In this document: piece by piece, positions 11,912 to 59,051 of the stretch | How the letters are laid out: the number at the start of each line of letters is the position of its first letter | Numbering within the stretch: the stretch's first letter is position 1 | Sequence record: MW057919.1 | Strand: one strand, 5' to 3' | DNA length: 64,000 nucleotides | The notes under the pieces: generated by a model | What the model was told of the DNA's origin: nothing | Seen by the model: only the letters and a program-made list of their open reading frames with translations | The model's database searches: none | Program-made: the position numbers and the translations under genes

Positions 11912-11967
11912 GCCTCCCTTCGGGGAGGCTTTATATCGTAATGAAAAAAATTTGAGATTTATATTAC
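11912..11967 (+). promoter_or_regulatory. Terminator + early promoter cassette
   Basis: GCCTCCC-ttcg-GGGAGGC (11912-11929), then AAAAAAATTTGAGATT-TATATTAC (core 11960-11967). Confidence 0.8.
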
Positions 11968-40217: not shown

Positions 40218-40586
40218 GTGATGCAATGTTTAACACACGTAATGAAGTTAGTGGCCGTATTAAGTACGTTGTTATACGTATCAAACCCACTAGCTGCATC
40301 GTTGGTAGTTGACGAGAATTACTGTAATGGTGTTGCACTTATAGCACATGCCACAGCAGAAGCACGTCAGCGTAAAACACCCATTTTACAATGGGAAGAA
40401 AACCTACGATCCCTAAAAGGGTACGGCGTGAAGAACAAAGATAACGTTCTTTACAATGTTCTCCCAGCAGCAATTAAAGAGGTGCACGTTGTGTATTCAC
40501 GTAGACAAAGCCCACGTGATGCATACGTTACATCATTTAAAACCTGTATGGATAACAACTACGGTAAAGCTGTGGTTGTAAAATAA
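40218..40586 (+). CDS. Exported two-Cys helical protein (orphan family member), 122 aa
   Basis: Signal peptide; C36 and C110; C..VA..A...AEARQ pattern. Confidence 0.7.
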   Translation: MMQCLTHVMKLVAVLSTLLYVSNPLAASLVVDENYCNGVALIAHATAEARQRKTPILQWEENLRSLKGYGVKNKDNVLYNVLPAAIKEVHVVYSRRQSPRDAYVTSFKTCMDNNYGKAVVVK

Positions 40587-40621: not shown

Positions 40622-40939
40622 ATGAGAATCTGTGGGTTGCAAATGTATAAAGTATTTGTTATATCAATGATAACACTAACGGCTATATCAACATGTGTAA
40701 CTTTCATTATTAATATAAAAAATCATTATATTCACTGGATGGGTGTTTATAAGGTTAGATATGTATTAGATAAAATGCCCAATGGCATAAGTTATTTTTT
40801 CTATCAAAATGCTGTCCAAGACATTATAGATAAAGAATCATCTAAAATAACAAATCAACATATTTTTACATCTTTTATTTACGATATCAACTCATTGATT
40901 ATATTAAAATGTAATAATAGGGAAACAGCAAATGAATGA
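40622..40939 (+). CDS. Membrane-anchored hypothetical protein, about 98-105 aa
   Basis: N-terminal TM helix; start may be 40643. Confidence 0.65.
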   Translation: MRICGLQMYKVFVISMITLTAISTCVTFIINIKNHYIHWMGVYKVRYVLDKMPNGISYFFYQNAVQDIIDKESSKITNQHIFTSFIYDINSLIILKCNNRETANE

Positions 40940-41222
40940 TATCATGACAGTAATTATAGGTATTTTGTTTCTGATTATAATGATGGCTTTAATTAACTGG
41001 GGTTATTATGCCATCAAACACACGATAAAGTGTAACAGGCTTTATAAAGAAGCACTATCAATTATTGACAATATGAGTGATGGTTTATCTGAATACCAGT
41101 ATACAGTAGCTATTGGACGTTTACGTAAAAAGGCATACTCTATCGACCATTTAACTGCTGTTAAAATGTTTGAAGCATTAGACTTAGTTATTAAAGATAA
41201 GTCAAGAAAGAAAAATAAATAA
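40932..41222 (+). CDS. Membrane-anchored hypothetical protein, 96 aa
   Basis: N-terminal TM helix. Confidence 0.7.
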   Translation: MNDIMTVIIGILFLIIMMALINWGYYAIKHTIKCNRLYKEALSIIDNMSDGLSEYQYTVAIGRLRKKAYSIDHLTAVKMFEALDLVIKDKSRKKNK

Positions 41223-41230
41223 GCATAAAT

Positions 41231-41287
41231 AGGAGAGCTATTTAGCTCTCCTTTATTGCATTAAATTTTTTTTGAAATCTATATTAC
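41231..41287 (+). promoter_or_regulatory. Terminator + early promoter cassette
   Basis: AGGAGAGCT-attt-AGCTCTCCT; CATTAAATTTTTTTTGAAATC-TATATTAC (core 41280-41287); 30 bp identical to 56419-56448. Confidence 0.85.
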
Positions 41288-41323
41288 ATATTTGGTCAAG
41301 TCATATCAAAATAGGTAGTTATA

Positions 41324-41497
41324 ATGCTAGCATTACATTCACTACTATTATTAGTTATAGTGATTTGTTATATAATTCATAAGTGGTTGTGGTATACTTT
41401 CAATATGTTTAAACTAAAAGACATTATTAAAAATAAAGACAATTTAACTAATGATGAACTATTAAAATTACTCATTGATAAAATAAAGGCAACCTAA
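41324..41497 (+). CDS. Small membrane protein, 57 aa (not in track)
   Basis: MLALHSLLLLVIVICYIIHKWLWY...; AGGT RBS; TAATG coupling to next gene. Confidence 0.6.
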   Translation: MLALHSLLLLVIVICYIIHKWLWYTFNMFKLKDIIKNKDNLTNDELLKLLIDKIKAT

Positions 41498-41986: not shown

Positions 41987-42895
41987 ATGCTAAAGGTAAA
42001 ATCATTACTCACTGGCCATATTCTTCGAGCTACCTATGATTGGTTTCTTGAGAATAACTTCAGAGATATTCTAATTGTAGCACATACTCAATTAGTACCT
42101 GATTTATCTGAGGTAGCTCTAAAGCATGCGAAAGAAGATCACACTATCACTTTCAATATCCATCCACGCTGTGCAAAGAATTTTTATATCAGTGACGAAT
42201 ATATCTCTTTCAATGTAACAGTAAATGGAGTTGGGGTCAGTATTAAACTTCCTCTTTATGCAGTATTGGGTGTAGTTACACCTATTGATGATAATTCTAA
42301 CGCATTCTTTGAAATGCCACTAGTAGATAGATATCTCAATGCAGATACTATTCGTGCAACATTAGAAGGAACTGTTAATAATGTAGTTGACAAAAACCCA
42401 GTATTAACTACCGTAGGTAATGTCACTGAGGTTAATTTTAAAAATAAAGCCGATACCACTAATGGTAAGTTAGTTGTAAGGAATACATCTGAGAATGAGC
42501 ATGATCAGATGATTGAAAGCGCCATTAACAGAGTAACTGAATTTAGTAATCCAGAATTAGATGCACATATTAGAGTAGCGGTAACTGTAATTAAACAGAA
42601 TGCACCAGAATTAATTATGGATTGGTGTGAGCGGGTTATTAATTGTACACGTAATGAAAACTATCAGGATAACATCAATGTACTTATGATGGAACTCCTC
42701 AGTTACCCTATTTCAAATGTGGTTAGTGAATCAACTGTGGACTCGGGTGATAATACATCTAATTCATTTGACAATGATGTAAATAAGATGGTTGAGGATT
42801 TCAATAATTCTTCCAATTCGCAGGTTATTATTAATAAACCTTCTCGTCCTACCGGTACACCAAAACTCACTGTTATTAAAGGTGGTAAGAAATGA
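41987..42895 (+). CDS. sspB: SspB-like ClpXP adaptor with long central insert and XB-like tail, 302 aa
   Basis: LRATYDWFLEN..ITFNI..YISFNVTVNGV...LPLYAVLGV..FFE aligns with the SspB core; C-terminal PKLTVIK resembles the SspB ClpX-binding PALRVVK. Confidence 0.75.
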   Translation: MLKVKSLLTGHILRATYDWFLENNFRDILIVAHTQLVPDLSEVALKHAKEDHTITFNIHPRCAKNFYISDEYISFNVTVNGVGVSIKLPLYAVLGVVTPIDDNSNAFFEMPLVDRYLNADTIRATLEGTVNNVVDKNPVLTTVGNVTEVNFKNKADTTNGKLVVRNTSENEHDQMIESAINRVTEFSNPELDAHIRVAVTVIKQNAPELIMDWCERVINCTRNENYQDNINVLMMELLSYPISNVVSESTVDSGDNTSNSFDNDVNKMVEDFNNSSNSQVIINKPSRPTGTPKLTVIKGGKK

Positions 42896-43149
42896 ATGCA
42901 ACTTTAGCAATTCTTTTTAGTAGTATCAGTATCGCTGGTTATCAAGCCAATGGTGCATCGCAGTCAACCGCTGAGTTCTCTGACATGGCTACTTGTTTTA
43001 GCGCGATTGAGCGCATTCAAAAACTAGCTAAAGCAAGTGCTATTCGTAATAATGTAGAGACTGTAAAAATCAGTGATGGTGTTCTATTACGTTATTTTTC
43101 TTCTAGTACTAGTAAAGTAGAACATACTCTAATCTGTGTAAATAAATAG
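42892..43149 (+). CDS. Small exported protein with two Cys, 85 aa
   Basis: Signal-like N-terminus; FSDMATC..A and terminal ICV motifs. Confidence 0.65.
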   Translation: MNATLAILFSSISIAGYQANGASQSTAEFSDMATCFSAIERIQKLAKASAIRNNVETVKISDGVLLRYFSSSTSKVEHTLICVNK

Positions 43150-49210: not shown

Positions 49211-49277
49211 ACCTCCCTTCGGGGAGGTTTTATATTGTGTTTTTTTTGTATTCAAACATATTTAAACAGTATATTAC
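49211..49277 (+). promoter_or_regulatory. Terminator + early promoter cassette
   Basis: ACCTCCC-ttcg-GGGAGGT; TTTGTATTCAAACATATTTAAACAG-TATATTAC (core 49270-49277). Confidence 0.85.
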
Positions 49278-52698: not shown

Positions 52699-52716
52699 AA
52701 TAATTACTTAATATAC

Positions 52717-52783
52717 ACCCTCCCTTCGGGGAGGGTTTTATTTATCTTTTTTTGTATTTAAACTATTTAAAAAGCTATATTAC
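52717..52783 (+). promoter_or_regulatory. Terminator + early promoter cassette
   Basis: ACCCTCCC-ttcg-GGGAGGGT; TTTGTATTTAAACTATTTAAAAAGC-TATATTAC (core 52776-52783). Confidence 0.85.
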
Positions 52784-52816
52784 AAATATGAATTTAATAA
52801 CCAAGAGGGCAATACA

Positions 52817-53080
52817 ATGACTGAACGTTTGAAATCCGTATGGTGCGCTTGCAGCTTACTGCGTGAACGCTGGAGACACATCCAAGACATTGCTGTCGGG
52901 GATGAACATCATGTCATAGTAAAAAACGATATGCTGATGGTGTTTCGTGGTCAAGTACCGGTAGGTAGCATGTACCGGGGTGACAGTGACCCACTCATCT
53001 ACGAGGGTGGTGCACTGGAAGAATTTACTAAAGTTGTATTGGATTTAGAATTCAATACTCGTGGTGAAACCAATAGTTAA
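52817..53080 (+). CDS. Hypothetical early protein, 87 aa
   Basis: GAGG RBS. Confidence 0.75.
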   Translation: MTERLKSVWCACSLLRERWRHIQDIAVGDEHHVIVKNDMLMVFRGQVPVGSMYRGDSDPLIYEGGALEEFTKVVLDLEFNTRGETNS

Positions 53081-53106
53081 TAAAATTAATTTTGAGGTAA
53101 TTCATT

Positions 53107-53514
53107 ATGAAATATGTAATTGTATTTATGTTGTCTATTGTAACTATCACTGCTAACTCGGCTGTCATGTACACTAATCGTGATTCATGCATCGAGTTTG
53201 TAAAACAGGCAGATGAATTGTTTGTAAAAGGTGCATCTGTAACTGAAGTGCAAATGAAGACTTATGAAAGGATTCATTATATCCTTAATAACACTAAAGA
53301 TCTAAAGACCAACCAGTCTAAAGTTGAAGAACTCACTGGTCTATTTTACCTATGGTCTAAGGTAGATAAAATGGCAATTGAGGCAAGTTTGCCACGTGCA
53401 ACAAATGCTGCTAAAGTCTATAAGACCACTCCTGAGAAATTCATCATTGATGGTTATTTCCAGCGTTGTGTAGCGGCAGGTGCGTTTGAAGCAAAACCAC
53501 TTACTCTAAAATAA
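53107..53514 (+). CDS. Exported two-Cys helical protein, 135 aa
   Basis: Signal peptide (..TANS/A); C28 and C121. Confidence 0.75.
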   Translation: MKYVIVFMLSIVTITANSAVMYTNRDSCIEFVKQADELFVKGASVTEVQMKTYERIHYILNNTKDLKTNQSKVEELTGLFYLWSKVDKMAIEASLPRATNAAKVYKTTPEKFIIDGYFQRCVAAGAFEAKPLTLK

Positions 53515-53526
53515 TGGAGGTACAAC

Positions 53527-53886
53527 ATGCTTAAGAATTGGCTATTATTCCTTTTCCTGCCAATCCTGTCCATTGCATGTCAGCCTGCCCACGCTGTAGA
53601 AGTGGGTATTACTAAGAAATCATGTAATGTGGCAGTAAATCTTTCACAAAAAGCAACTGAGCTTTATGATAAGAACCTATCCCAATTTGAGATAATGATG
53701 CAGTTAGACATGATCTCTCGTAAGGATATGGATGACTTAGAGTTCTATGCAGGTACCGTATATGCTAAATTAAACTTAGTTGATATTCGCGTAAATAAAC
53801 GAAAAGGATTTACCAATGGAGCTATTCTAGATAGGCTAGCTGAAAACTGTGTTGAAGCAATTGGTACTAAATTTAACTTGGAGTAG
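53527..53886 (+). CDS. Exported two-Cys helical protein, 119 aa
   Basis: Signal peptide ending AHA; mature C33 and C108. Confidence 0.75.
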   Translation: MLKNWLLFLFLPILSIACQPAHAVEVGITKKSCNVAVNLSQKATELYDKNLSQFEIMMQLDMISRKDMDDLEFYAGTVYAKLNLVDIRVNKRKGFTNGAILDRLAENCVEAIGTKFNLE

Positions 53887-53889
53887 AAT

Positions 53890-54684
53890 ATGGTTAGTAT
53901 TTATATTGTCATTATACTCATGGCTATGCTAGCTGCATTGACATGTGGTAATTTGGTAGATAGCTGGGTAAGGCCAGCTATTCTAAAGTGGTTAAATGAT
54001 GATGTCGCTATTCATTTCACCAATGCTACCTGGATGGTTGGGGGGATCCCTAATAGTGTTCCAATGCAACTAGGTAAAGCTGTTTGGTTACCCAAATACG
54101 TGGGTGACGGAATACGTCTTTATATCACGGCTGATGAAATAAAATTTGGATGGAATGGTAAAGAAAAAGATGCTTTAGCACGAGCCATTGTTGAAGTTAT
54201 CTTTATTGGTAAAAATCCAAATAGTAAACTTCTTGAAGTAAGTATTAAACCTATTTGGTTACACCCTTCTATCCAAAAAGAAAGTTTCTATTTAATGTTT
54301 GATTGGGAAAAGCTTTATACAAAAAATGAAGAGATGCGTATTTGTTGGAAGACAATACGTCACACTTTTTTCTATGGATTCCTAGGTTTGCTATTTGGCG
54401 GTAGTGCCAATGCAGATAACCTTGTATTAACTGAACGTGGATGTGACCAATATGAAGCAATGGTGAGAACTATTGCATCTAAAGCTTATATTGGATTAGA
54501 TCCAGTTATGGGTAGGGAATTCATTATTAATGATCCTGATATGTTAAATGCCCGTGAGAAAGCACAACGTAATACCCGTATCATTATCGATATGGTGGAA
54601 ACTGGACAAGAACCCAAAGACATTGCATTATGGATGAATACTCAATGTAAACAAGAAGCAGTGTCAAATTTAATCAAACAGTGA
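53890..54684 (+). CDS. Membrane protein fused in frame to an exported two-Cys helical domain (internal ATG 54334), 264 aa
   Basis: N-terminal TM helix; internal signal-like segment ending ANA, then two Cys. Confidence 0.7.
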   Translation: MVSIYIVIILMAMLAALTCGNLVDSWVRPAILKWLNDDVAIHFTNATWMVGGIPNSVPMQLGKAVWLPKYVGDGIRLYITADEIKFGWNGKEKDALARAIVEVIFIGKNPNSKLLEVSIKPIWLHPSIQKESFYLMFDWEKLYTKNEEMRICWKTIRHTFFYGFLGLLFGGSANADNLVLTERGCDQYEAMVRTIASKAYIGLDPVMGREFIINDPDMLNAREKAQRNTRIIIDMVETGQEPKDIALWMNTQCKQEAVSNLIKQ

Positions 54685-54697
54685 AAAAGGCATAGAT

Positions 54698-55081
54698 ATG
54701 AAAAGAAATTTTGAAGATGATCACGTGGTAATGGCAGTGGAAGTATATGAGAAACTGAAAGAAGCTGCTGCTTATTCATTACACTCTTCTGAAATTAGTA
54801 AGATCGAACGACATATGCGTAAGTTTAATCGTGTTCAACGCGATAAACATATTGAAAATATGCATATGGAAATGCTTGAGAAACGCGAGGCTATTAGAAA
54901 AGCAAAATCTTTCTTTTCTCAAAATGCCGGTAAAATTGGTTGCGTAGTAGATAGGCTTGTCAAAGTATGTGAAGTGTATAAAATGGATAAGTCTATGGTG
55001 GTTGTTGAGTTTCTCCAACATAAATCTAAAATTAAAGTTCCAGTAAATCCTGAAAAAATTACTATTCTTACCATTAAATAA
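54698..55081 (+). CDS. Hypothetical basic protein, 127 aa (paralog of 29687..30289)
   Basis: Manual alignment of N-termini. Confidence 0.75.
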   Translation: MKRNFEDDHVVMAVEVYEKLKEAAAYSLHSSEISKIERHMRKFNRVQRDKHIENMHMEMLEKREAIRKAKSFFSQNAGKIGCVVDRLVKVCEVYKMDKSMVVVEFLQHKSKIKVPVNPEKITILTIK

Positions 55082-55098
55082 ATGAAGAAGGATTTAAA

Positions 55099-55554
55099 AT
55101 GAAAAATGTAATTGCAGCAGCTTTCGCTGGTCTCATTGCCATTACCGGTATCATGTTCAATACCGCAATGGCTGAAATCAAGATTGGTAAAAAAGATGCT
55201 CAACTCACTGTGCAGTCGTGTGCAATGGTTGAAACCATTACTAAACAAGCTGTATTTCGAATGAGTGAAGGTCATAGCGCAGATGAAGTTGGTGTGCTTA
55301 TGCTCAACAACTCTGCTAAACTCAAAGATGAGTTGGATACCAATAATTGGATTGCGTTAACATTCGTATTCAATAGTCTTAATAAAATCAATAATGACCT
55401 TAACAGTAAAGAGATCCATGATTATATCCGTAGTCAAGGTTACAATGTGACTACTCCTAATCTGGCAGCTTTTATCAGCGGGTATTATGGCAATTACTGC
55501 ATGAAGCATATTGGTGAGAAATTCACTCACATGGTAATTGTTGAACTCATTTAA
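55099..55554 (+). CDS. Exported two-Cys helical protein, 151 aa
   Basis: Signal peptide ending AMA; C41 and C134. Confidence 0.75.
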   Translation: MKNVIAAAFAGLIAITGIMFNTAMAEIKIGKKDAQLTVQSCAMVETITKQAVFRMSEGHSADEVGVLMLNNSAKLKDELDTNNWIALTFVFNSLNKINNDLNSKEIHDYIRSQGYNVTTPNLAAFISGYYGNYCMKHIGEKFTHMVIVELI

Positions 55555-55586
55555 TTCATATCGAATACTTTCAAAAGGAAAATAGG

Positions 55587-55964
55587 ATGAAATACGTCTT
55601 CTCGCTCATTATCACTATGGTAGCAATGTCGGTTAATGCACAACCCGTAACCGTGTCATCTTGCTACGTGCTGCACAGCTTGGCAAAGAATATGGTTCAA
55701 TTCTACACTAATGGCGGTGAGCCATTGGAGATGTATGCAATACTGCAAGATGAACTATCCATTGCCATAGATAAAAACCAGAGTGATAAGGCACTCGCTA
55801 TTAATATCGCATTGGATAATGTCGATGTAATATACCAAAATCTCACTGATCCCGCACTTAAGCTTTTGGCAAAGAGCGAGGGAAGTGATCTTGGTGAGAT
55901 GCTGACTGAAAAACTCAGTAATGGGTGTTTCAATATAGTCGGCGAGGAGTTGTATGATAACTAG
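55587..55964 (+). CDS. Exported two-Cys helical protein, 125 aa
   Basis: Signal peptide ending VNA; C26 and C114. Confidence 0.75.
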   Translation: MKYVFSLIITMVAMSVNAQPVTVSSCYVLHSLAKNMVQFYTNGGEPLEMYAILQDELSIAIDKNQSDKALAINIALDNVDVIYQNLTDPALKLLAKSEGSDLGEMLTEKLSNGCFNIVGEELYDN

Positions 55965-56193
55965 AATCATCCTAATTGTTGCATGGGTATGGGTAATCTC
56001 TCTTATGGGAATGATTACGTATGTTCTTTATGATACGTATCAATTTCGTAAGAAATTAGAAATGCCTGTTGTAGAATGGGAAGATAAGGCGAAGGACACT
56101 CCTGTTAAGAAGTGTCCAGATGAAGTATTATTCGCTGAAGACCCAAAGGATGGCAAACTCAAAATGGGATGCCCTGAGAGTTATAAGAAATAA
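55954..56193 (+). CDS. Single-pass membrane protein with two C-terminal Cys, 79 aa
   Basis: GAGGAG RBS; TM helix. Confidence 0.75.
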   Translation: MITRIILIVAWVWVISLMGMITYVLYDTYQFRKKLEMPVVEWEDKAKDTPVKKCPDEVLFAEDPKDGKLKMGCPESYKK

Positions 56194-56195
56194 TT

Positions 56196-56215
56196 AGAGG
56201 ACCTTCGGGTCCTCT
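56196..56215 (+). terminator. Terminator
   Basis: AGAGGACC-ttcg-GGTCCTCT + TTTT. Confidence 0.85.
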
Positions 56216-56275
56216 TTTTAACCGACTGGACGGTTAAAACTAGGTGGGATAAATTAAACTATTTGAGGAAATCTA

Positions 56276-56383
56276 ATGCAACTTAGTAATGAACTTTTCT
56301 ATGTGGGTATGGTAGCTGTATCAATGTCAATCGGTATGCTATTTAGCTATATTTACCACACTCATAAGAAAAAATATAAATAA
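56276..56383 (+). CDS. Small membrane peptide, 35 aa (not in track)
   Basis: GAGGA RBS; [35 protein letters not shown]; bounded by terminators. Confidence 0.6.
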
Positions 56384-56391
56384 AGTCATAA

Positions 56392-56447
56392 ACCCTCTCC
56401 TTTGGGAGAGGGCTTTTACATTAAATTTTTTTTGAAATCTATATTAC
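56392..56447 (+). promoter_or_regulatory. Terminator + early promoter cassette
   Basis: CCCTCTCC-tttg-GGAGAGGG; CATTAAATTTTTTTTGAAATC-TATATTAC (core 56440-56447). Confidence 0.85.
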
Positions 56448-58616: not shown

Positions 58617-59051
58617 ATGGCTGATATAGTAATTGCACTAATCCTGTCAGCAATTATTGTTTATCTAATTAATATTTTTAAACACCCAAAAATAATTTAT
58701 GCCAATAGTGTAAATGATAATGTCTTCATTGTTACTGGTTGCTCTTATATATCTGAAAATAATGAAGATGGTACATTAACAACTTTTTCACCTAAATTAA
58801 ATAATAGGTTAATAATTGATTTAACTAAAGGTCAACCCAATAAAGACTTTTATATTTCAGTATTAGATAACACACTTAAATTCCATCACACTGTTGATGA
58901 AATTATCACAGCTAATAAATGGGAAGCTTTATTTAAAAATAGCATAACTAAAGAGGATGTGTGTATCTCAGGAATACCTCTTAAAAATAAAAATATAAAA
59001 TGTAATTTACACTGGGTTATAGCACCAAGTAAAATGGTGAATAAATTGTAA
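58617..59051 (+). CDS. Membrane-anchored hypothetical protein, 144 aa
   Basis: N-terminal TM helix. Confidence 0.7.
   Translation: MADIVIALILSAIIVYLINIFKHPKIIYANSVNDNVFIVTGCSYISENNEDGTLTTFSPKLNNRLIIDLTKGQPNKDFYISVLDNTLKFHHTVDEIITANKWEALFKNSITKEDVCISGIPLKNKNIKCNLHWVIAPSKMVNKL

Follow-up and report, generated by a model that had tools for sequence, protein, structure and literature searches.

An array of small genes in the phiKZ genome

The 64,000-nucleotide stretch of sequence record MW057919.1 analysed here (the window) carries an array of small genes whose products very probably form a family of exported proteins with one conserved Cys pair and a predicted saposin-like fold. Over the 3.6 kb spanning the array, identity to Pseudomonas phage phiKZ and its close relatives is 100%; the window belongs to a phage of the phiKZ species and is collinear with vB_PaeM_kmuB (MW057919) with an offset of 186000 at both 40299 and 52700. 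Against NC_004629 the offsets at 40299 and 52700 differ by 270 bp, which points to a 270-bp indel between 40.6 and 52.7 kb. The open reading frames (ORFs) of the array are PHIKZ246.1, 247, 248, 249, 250, 251, 252, 253 and 253.1, and the NC_004629 annotation gives none of them a function. An original prediction had read five of these ORFs as a diversified panel of periplasmic inhibitors. Its ORF coordinates are all correct and correspond to PHIKZ247, 248, 249, 251 and 252, the four peptide stretches it quoted are found verbatim, and the two-Cys transmembrane protein that it placed at the end of the operon is PHIKZ253, which has one transmembrane segment. The features of the array and of one detached gene are as follows (lengths in amino acids, aa).

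52717-52736, + strand: strong intrinsic terminator hairpin, an 8-bp GC-rich stem followed by a T run; ends the upstream unit of gp246 (HD phosphohydrolase)
52738-52783, + strand: phiKZ early-type promoter motif, a T-rich tract plus an exact TATATTAC at 52776-52783
52817-53080, + strand: PHIKZ246.1, 87 aa, cytoplasmic-looking; heads the transcription unit
53107-53514, + strand: PHIKZ247, signal peptide and helical domain, Cys28/Cys121
53527-53886, + strand: PHIKZ248, probable lipoprotein with saposin-like domain, Cys33/Cys108
53890-54684, + strand: PHIKZ249, 264 aa, hydrophobic segments 1-23 and 158-175, W-rich middle domain, C-terminal domain (54415-54681) with Cys185/Cys253
54698-55081, + strand: PHIKZ250, basic 127-aa protein inside the array, without export signal
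55099-55554, + strand: PHIKZ251, signal peptide (AMA↓E) and family domain with an insertion, Cys41/Cys134
55587-55964, + strand: PHIKZ252, signal peptide (VNA↓Q) and acidic family domain (isoelectric point, pI, 4.2), Cys26/Cys114
55954-56193, + strand: PHIKZ253, 79-aa single-pass membrane protein with two Cys in the C-terminal tail; 11-nt overlap with gp252
56196-56215, + strand: hairpin then TTTT directly 3' of gp253, a possible partial terminator
56276-56383, + strand: PHIKZ253.1, 35-aa hydrophobic micro-ORF with a good ribosome-binding site, isolated between the hairpin at 56196-56215 and the strong terminator at 56393-56412
56393-56412, + strand: strong terminator closing the unit; the next TATATTAC motif is at 56440
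40218-40586, + strand: PHIKZ229, detached; signal peptide, Cys36/Cys110, four-helix layout

The whole array recurs in the same order, downstream of an HD phosphohydrolase, in metagenomic contig L007, which derives from a diverged phiKZ-like phage roughly 80% identical. PHIKZ246.1 is missing there (window 52817-53080 against L007:1862-1993) and is, judging by this absence, dispensable; the promoter motif of L007 directly abuts the gp247 orthologue. The deposited annotation of phage U5 (MT995928.1) labels genes in the region equivalent to window 52700-56300 'putative DNA methylase', 'MazF family toxin-antitoxin system protein' and 'putative methyltransferase', the gp248 orthologue being called a methylase; these names receive no support from any of the searches run on the array.

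Four divergent paralogues and two members linked by predicted fold

The relationship among the array proteins is distant. Pairwise identity among members is 17-25%, and pairwise BLASTP is nearly silent, with the exception of gp251 against gp252 (E 0.002 in a nine-sequence database). A hidden Markov model (HMM) built solely from the mature regions of relatives outside the window was run against the 203 window ORFs of at least 50 aa: gp248 (2e-21), gp251 (3.4e-10), gp252 (0.016) and gp247 (0.027) take the top ranks, and noise begins at 0.18. PHIKZ247, the most divergent of the sequence-supported paralogues, reaches E 4.7e-4 once gp248, gp251 and gp252 have joined the HMM. By profile homology, gp247, gp248, gp251 and gp252 are true paralogues. 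The Cys pair, on whose conservation the original prediction had staked its case, is kept in 38/38 family sequences. An alignment of 15 proteins has both Cys in common throughout, with a C-x4-G-x-[KE]-F motif around the second Cys and [ILV]-T-x3-C before the first. The array that had been proposed is thus real, in the sense of profile homology among these four proteins together with a conserved Cys pair in helical proteins with export signals.

Two further members had been proposed, and for both the claim stands in part. The C-terminal half of gp249 (gp249-C) has the Cys pair, the preceding hydrophobic segment and a fold match, without a link at the sequence level; PHIKZ229, the suggested sixth member at 40218, has the same layout and a predicted-fold match, without significant sequence similarity. 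Profile-profile comparison with hhalign gives no significant result for either against the core family. Both are accordingly tied to the other four by predicted fold only, and sequence homology is not claimed for them. A candidate bridge between phiPA3 gp303 and PHIKZ229 through phrog_2315 was discarded, as the gp303 match is gone after signal-peptide removal.

In PHROGs, the window proteins fall into phrog_15284, 22400, 26535, 27482, 22383 and 16193, separate families that are all annotated 'unknown function'. The gp251 protein weakly matches phrog_15284, the family of gp248 (E 0.002), and mature PHIKZ229 matches the larger phrog_2315, likewise of 'unknown function', at E 2e-4. The family relationship described here is absent from the PHROGs record, which splits the members. 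Searches of Pfam, NCBIfam and PADLOC and a PDB sequence-profile search returned nothing meaningful and no catalytic-family match; Pfam, including SapB_1 and SapB_2, gave no family at E up to 1 beyond noise.

Other window ORFs share superficial traits with the family. Those at 58617, 62350 and 40622 combine a hydrophobic N-terminal segment with two Cys spaced by about 74 residues, but look neither helical nor family-like and were rejected. Three consecutive small ORFs (105, 96 and 57 aa) at window 40622-41497, right after PHIKZ229, each have one N-terminal hydrophobic segment and form a second cluster of membrane-targeted early products. An 85-aa ORF at 42892-43149, whose N-terminus resembles a signal peptide and whose two Cys are separated by 47 residues, may be a small exported protein of another family.

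Export signals, lipoboxes and topology

Export segments were called by a home-made rule that combines hydrophobicity with an A-x-A site, and the calls are heuristic. By this rule gp247, gp248, gp251 and gp252 show the n-h-c organisation of type I signals: a short basic n-region, a hydrophobic core of 10-20 residues, and small residues at -3 and -1. The small-x-small sites are NSA↓V in gp247 (ANS/NSA), AHA↓V in gp248, AMA↓E in gp251 and VNA↓Q in gp252, with an internal SANA↓D in gp249. The first Cys lies 8-16 residues past the predicted cleavage site, and the Cys-Cys spacing in gp247, gp248, gp249-C, gp251 and gp252 is 93, 75, 68, 93 and 88 residues. The shared architecture of the original prediction, an export segment, an early Cys and a second Cys 68-93 residues on, had its Cys positions right in every case. 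A crude scan for N-terminal hydrophobicity flags 17 of 101 non-overlapping window ORFs, and 6 of the 7 consecutive genes 247-253; in PHIKZ250 an export signal was not found. The family members would be exported, and their Cys pair would form a disulfide in the periplasm.

The signal-like segment of gp249 is internal (158-175) in a 264-aa ORF and is followed by an 89-residue domain with Cys185 and Cys253. Both the fused frame and the internal segment are kept in a 71%-identical relative. An internal translation start at M149 was considered as a source of a separate gp249-C and rejected: a Shine-Dalgarno-like GAAGAG abuts the ATG with no spacing, and a topology with two transmembrane segments is therefore favoured. 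The N-terminus would lie outside, the middle domain in the cytoplasm and the C-terminal domain in the periplasm, because positive charges precede the second hydrophobic segment and the start of the C-terminal domain is acidic, as the positive-inside rule would have it. The tail of gp253 is probably cytoplasmic, since FRKK comes after its transmembrane segment.

The gp248 protein carries a lipobox, LSIAC, with Cys18 inside the signal peptide, and AHA↓V as an alternative signal peptidase I site. A lipobox Cys stands at the end of the signal peptide in 6 of 8 aligned gp248 orthologue sequences, and the contexts in gp248 and its orthologues are LSIAC, FVGC, FTGC and FSGC. Because this Cys ends the signal peptide, gp248 and most of its orthologues are probably lipoproteins. 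The pattern is also matched in phiPA3, Phabio and PS119XW, as well as in P0011 and P0023, and two members of a 150-aa subgroup have the canonical LIGC and LAAC. It is absent from orthologues P0019, P0021, Psa21 and RVTF4 and from gp247 and gp251; P0019 and P0021 have Ser in place of the lipobox Cys, and lipidation is not essential to the family. The pattern also matches at Cys26 of gp252, but this is the structural Cys and the match is regarded as spurious.

A predicted saposin-like fold

AlphaFold2 modelled mature gp248 confidently from an eight-sequence alignment, with pLDDT 94.6 and pTM 0.84. In mature numbering, the model has helices at 7-25, 30-44, 48-59/61-69 and 74-87, with Cys10 in helix 1 and Cys85 in the last helix, and a short N-terminal strand that pairs with a C-terminal one. 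The model was compared by Foldseek with the PDB and with the viral library BFVD; negative statements about folds refer to the 50 best matches listed for each. No PDB entry matches at E <=1e-3. The top five places in the PDB go to human saposin A and to saposin C, with two entries each, and to the saposin-like Na-SLP-1, all of them weak matches (probability 0.72-0.93, TM-score 0.55-0.68, E 0.3-0.8); designed helical proteins and other noise rank below. The predicted order of helices is that of saposins, which also have a link joining the first and last of them. The six conserved Cys and three disulfides of the saposin-like protein (SAPLIP) fold are not found; a single conserved pair is present, positioned like the link between first and last helices. 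As one of three disulfides is matched and Pfam gives no SapB match, the predicted fold is called 'saposin-like' and membership of the saposin family is not claimed.

In BFVD the gp248 model retrieves its Psa21 orthologue (TMq 0.90), phiPA3 gp303 (TMq 0.89) and the 201phi2-1 orthologue B3FJM7 (TMq 0.79). It also retrieves a 151-aa entry the size of gp251 (TMq 0.74, rank 4), a 121-aa PS119XW protein (TMq 0.76, rank 9) and a 264-aa entry the size of gp249 (TMq 0.72, rmsd 1.7 Å over 85 columns, rank 33); the 151-aa and 264-aa entries are equated with gp251 and gp249 solely by their length and accession series. The entry from PS119XW is orthologous to PHIKZ229 (59% identity) and is the top BFVD match of the PHIKZ229 model, which is of moderate quality (pLDDT 70) and shows a four-helix layout with Cys in the first and last helices. 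The BFVD matches of the gp248 and PHIKZ229 models further include small proteins of unrelated phages, several of them annotated 'Lipoprotein' (BcepSauron, Seszw_1, vB_EcoM-ep3, PPpW-3, FoX5), and a wider phage fold class may exist.

Distribution and selection

By tblastn, gp248 orthologues with 25-39% identity are present in phiPA3 (gp303), Phabio, PS119XW, HPP-Temi, Psa21, D6 and RVTF4, and a further one in 201phi2-1. The genomic setting is often similar: in phiPA3 and PS119XW the orthologue follows a gp246-like HD phosphohydrolase at a distance of one or two genes, in Phabio, Psa21 and RVTF4 it sits within a similar run of small genes, and in PS119XW, Psa21 and RVTF4 one or two adjacent further genes encode a signal peptide and two Cys. 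In Psa21 (L005:5334-5792) and RVTF4 (L006:5364-5810) a conserved, cytoplasmic-looking protein of about 150 aa is encoded between two exported members, a position that recalls gp250, with no obvious sequence similarity. Only about 12 relatives, all of 104-154 aa and phage-like, came out of two word-indexed searches over 5.8 billion proteins and a full HMMER scan over 1.84 billion representatives, and no cellular family was among the results. A long match (P0025, 1081 aa, six stretches) is probably spurious. Three partial proteins (P0006, P0008 and P0009) that share 86-90% identity with gp248 come from Klebsiella pneumoniae records, under the name 'hypothetical protein, partial' and on contigs 230-280 bp long, and look like phiKZ-like phage DNA carried into those assemblies. 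By sequence, the family is confined to Pseudomonas chimalliviruses; phiKZ, in which it has specifically expanded, has 5-6 copies, and the others have 1-3. PHIKZ229 is a single-copy gene with 42-60% identity across Pseudomonas chimalliviruses.

Between phiKZ and L007, the ratio of nonsynonymous to synonymous substitution rates (dN/dS) is 0.03-0.16 for gp247, gp248, gp249 and gp252 and 0.04-0.23 for flanking genes, rough values because dS is saturated; for gp251 this saturation made the ratio not computable. Given these low ratios, the paralogues are old, individually maintained genes under purifying selection and not a rapidly diversifying panel. The low pairwise identity from which the original prediction had argued for diversification is confirmed, but ongoing diversification is not, as the comparison with L007 indicates purifying selection (gp251 aside). 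The charge of the mature domain does vary, from pI 4.2 in gp252 to 9.4 in PHIKZ229.

An apparently early transcription unit

The early promoter proposed at 52776 is borne out as a putative one, recognised by its sequence: an early-type motif is present, and it is kept in L007. The context of this TATATTAC is nearly identical to those of the motifs at 49270 and 59125. Intergenic distances across genes 247-253 are -11 to 32 nt, the promoter motif and terminators bound the unit, and the array is apparently an early operon. In phiKZ, 28-32 early promoters with an AT-rich consensus are used by the virion RNA polymerase (PMC8244752). Across the window, TATATTAC motifs occur on the + strand at 11960, 25754, 41280, 49270, 49702, 52776, 56440 and 59125, in two types of context, '...attaaattttttttgaaatc TATATTAC' and '...ttttttgtattyaaac.atttaaa.ag. 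TATATTAC', and most lie directly 3' of a GC-rich terminator hairpin, making repeated terminator-promoter junctions.

Protein-level data exist for an identical protein. Churi gp059, which is 100% identical to gp248, was seen by mass spectrometry 15 min post-infection in two infection formats (PMC11849849). It was also among 15 early proteins overexpressed in PAO1, in a screen that singled out only gp335 as a growth inhibitor (PMC11849849). That overexpression of gp248 is not reported as toxic is evidence against a membrane-lytic role.

Possible functions

What might such proteins do in the infected cell? In the preferred model, the virion RNA polymerase would transcribe the array from its putative early promoter and the host Sec machinery would export the members. 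The gp248 protein and most of its orthologues would then probably be lipid-anchored through the lipobox Cys, other members would probably be released into the periplasm, and gp249 apparently holds its copy at the inner membrane, beside a cytoplasmic domain. The mature domain would be a four- or five-helix saposin-like bundle, closed by paired short N- and C-terminal strands, in which the conserved Cys pair would tie the first helix to the last, presumably through a periplasmic disulfide. Such members could act as binding modules in the cell envelope early in infection. They would be binders rather than enzymes because the residues that never vary among the aligned gp248 orthologues (T, S, C, M, G, N, C, G) include no acidic or basic residue and no His, and each paralogue would have its own partner because cores are conserved while surfaces differ (pI 4.2-9.4). 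The likeliest purpose would be to shield or condition the envelope of the infected cell, by blocking envelope proteins or incoming components of later phages or tailocins, because most of the early proteins that lytic phages are known to send to the periplasm or to make as lipoproteins serve in exclusion (T4 Spackle and Imm, T5 Llp, Cor). Taken jointly as a statement about family, fold and role, that PHIKZ247, 248, 251, 252, 249-C and, more distantly, PHIKZ229 are one family of small non-enzymatic envelope binders is held at somewhat below even confidence. The envelope-shielding or exclusion role, argued by analogy, comes first among the functions weighed and is itself tentative, with a probability well under one half.

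Several observations weigh against this model. Neither the 50 best PDB and BFVD matches listed nor the PDB profile search show similarity in structure or sequence to characterised exclusion proteins or hydrolase inhibitors. A single cell can house separate nuclei of two chimalliviruses, even when these are identical (PMC12908238), so that any exclusion would not be absolute. Purifying selection on every copy fits poorly with a fast arms race, the export calls come from a heuristic rule, the saposin matches by Foldseek have poor E-values (0.3-0.8), and of the three saposin disulfides only one is matched.

Could the fold itself be the clue to function? Proteins that handle lipids as saposins do might bind, extract or shuttle periplasmic phospholipid or lipid A/lipopolysaccharide (LPS), and so, instead of targeting proteins, alter the composition or mechanics of the envelope over the long infection cycle of a jumbo phage. 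Consistent fold matches in the PDB are indeed limited to saposins A and C and Na-SLP-1, the predicted helices are ordered as in saposins and the first and last would be joined in a similar way, several members are predicted to be lipid-anchored and so at the membrane surface, and conserved cores with freely varying surfaces would suit a ligand inside the bundle. However, the matches are weak (E above 0.1), the SapB match and two of the three disulfides are missing, small helical bundles converge easily, and the failure of overexpressed gp248 to be flagged as growth-inhibitory argues against strong membrane perturbation; lipid handling ranks second and is doubtful, at about one chance in four. 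Inhibition of peptidoglycan hydrolases or of amidases of type VI secretion systems (T6SS), as in Spackle or immunity proteins, with each paralogue set against a different lysozyme, transglycosylase or amidase, was the function first proposed for the array. Small, helical, exported and apparently early proteins with one Cys pair do resemble T4 Spackle, and paralogues of differing surface charge could match several enzymes. The analogies once drawn with Spackle, HdeA, Rap1a and Ivy are nevertheless not supported, as none of these, and no Tsi, PliC, Tai4 or other Rap/Tai protein, is found among the 50 best matches listed in PDB or BFVD or by the PDB profile search, and the saposin fold is the best structural analogue. 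There is no sign of fast diversification either, and P. aeruginosa already carries immunity to its own T6SS effectors; this third-ranked function, which is also an argument from analogy, is unlikely.

More remote is a part in envelope-to-cytoplasm sensing and lysis timing, in which the periplasmic domains would report an event such as a second adsorption through gp249 and gp253, with a logic like that of the T4 RI antiholin. In its inferred topology gp249 does span the membrane between a family domain on one side and a probably cytoplasmic domain on the other, and the membrane proteins gp253 and gp253.1 are apparently co-transcribed with the array. Yet no similarity to RI is seen, the idea derives purely from topology, and the phiKZ lysis cassette of spanins, holin and endolysin, gp141-144, lies elsewhere and was described in a paper that omits the array genes (PMC12894885); sensing is very improbable. 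A bolder speculation, with odds slimmer still, places the proteins at the early phage infection (EPI) vesicle: early proteins with Sec signals would be delivered into or onto it, and saposin-like lipid remodelling would help to open or dismantle its membrane and pass the genome to the nascent chimallin nucleus. If the vesicle originates from the inner membrane, its lumen would correspond topologically to the periplasm, and the idea fits the early timing, the Sec and lipoprotein targeting and a fold known for lipid extraction; transfer of the genome from EPI vesicle to nucleus is listed as an open question in a 2025 review of the field (PMC12908238). Least probable of all is chance, that is, unrelated small secreted ORFans that happen to share two Cys. 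Pairwise identity of just 17-25%, the want of a significant sequence link for gp249-C and PHIKZ229, and the abundance of small membrane or secreted phiKZ ORFs (the 17 of 101 that pass the crude hydrophobicity test in the window) would suit it, whereas independent profiles pick exactly gp247, gp248, gp251 and gp252 among 203 ORFs, the Cys pair is invariant, the C-x4-G-x-[KE]-F motif is shared, and the predicted folds are common at TM 0.72-0.90. For gp247, gp248, gp251 and gp252, chance resemblance is already largely refuted.

Significance and comparison with known systems

The finding is real and undescribed. As the original prediction had supposed, no description of the array was found in the literature searched, and no paper there treats these genes functionally; nor do the words periplasm, secreted, lipoprotein or signal peptide occur in the 2025 review. 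Studies of chimalliviruses, phiKZ included, have dealt chiefly with the phage nucleus, the EPI vesicle and the takeover of the cytoplasm, and here a model jumbo phage devotes an apparently early operon and one conserved detached gene to a family with export signals. The array thus offers concrete, tractable candidates for how a nucleus-forming phage manages the host envelope, and possibly a bacterial-virus branch of a fold known mainly from eukaryotic lipid biology and bacteriocins.

Among known folds, the closest comparison is with SAPLIPs (saposins A-D, NK-lysin, Na-SLP-1). Like these, the phage domains span about 80-95 residues and are predicted to have four or five helices in saposin order, the first and last being linked near the termini, here by a single Cys pair and a presumed disulfide. 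Unlike saposins with their three disulfides, the phage domains have one Cys pair and add a beta-strand clasp between N- and C-termini; they belong to a bacterial periplasm or lipoprotein setting, and the Foldseek E-values (0.3-0.8) are too weak to establish common ancestry. T5 Llp and the Cor proteins of T1/phi80-like phages are small, lipobox-bearing exclusion proteins of lytic phages that act at the envelope. The gp248 protein and its orthologues likewise carry a lipobox, whereas most phiKZ paralogues lack one and no sequence relationship to Llp or Cor was found. T4 Spackle, a periplasmic inhibitor of the gp5 tail lysozyme that acts in superinfection exclusion, remains the best functional analogy for an early exported phage protein, being small, early, helical and periplasmic with a signal peptide. 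Spackle is a single gene, in contrast to a phiKZ family of 5-6 members that is predicted to include lipoprotein and membrane-tethered forms.

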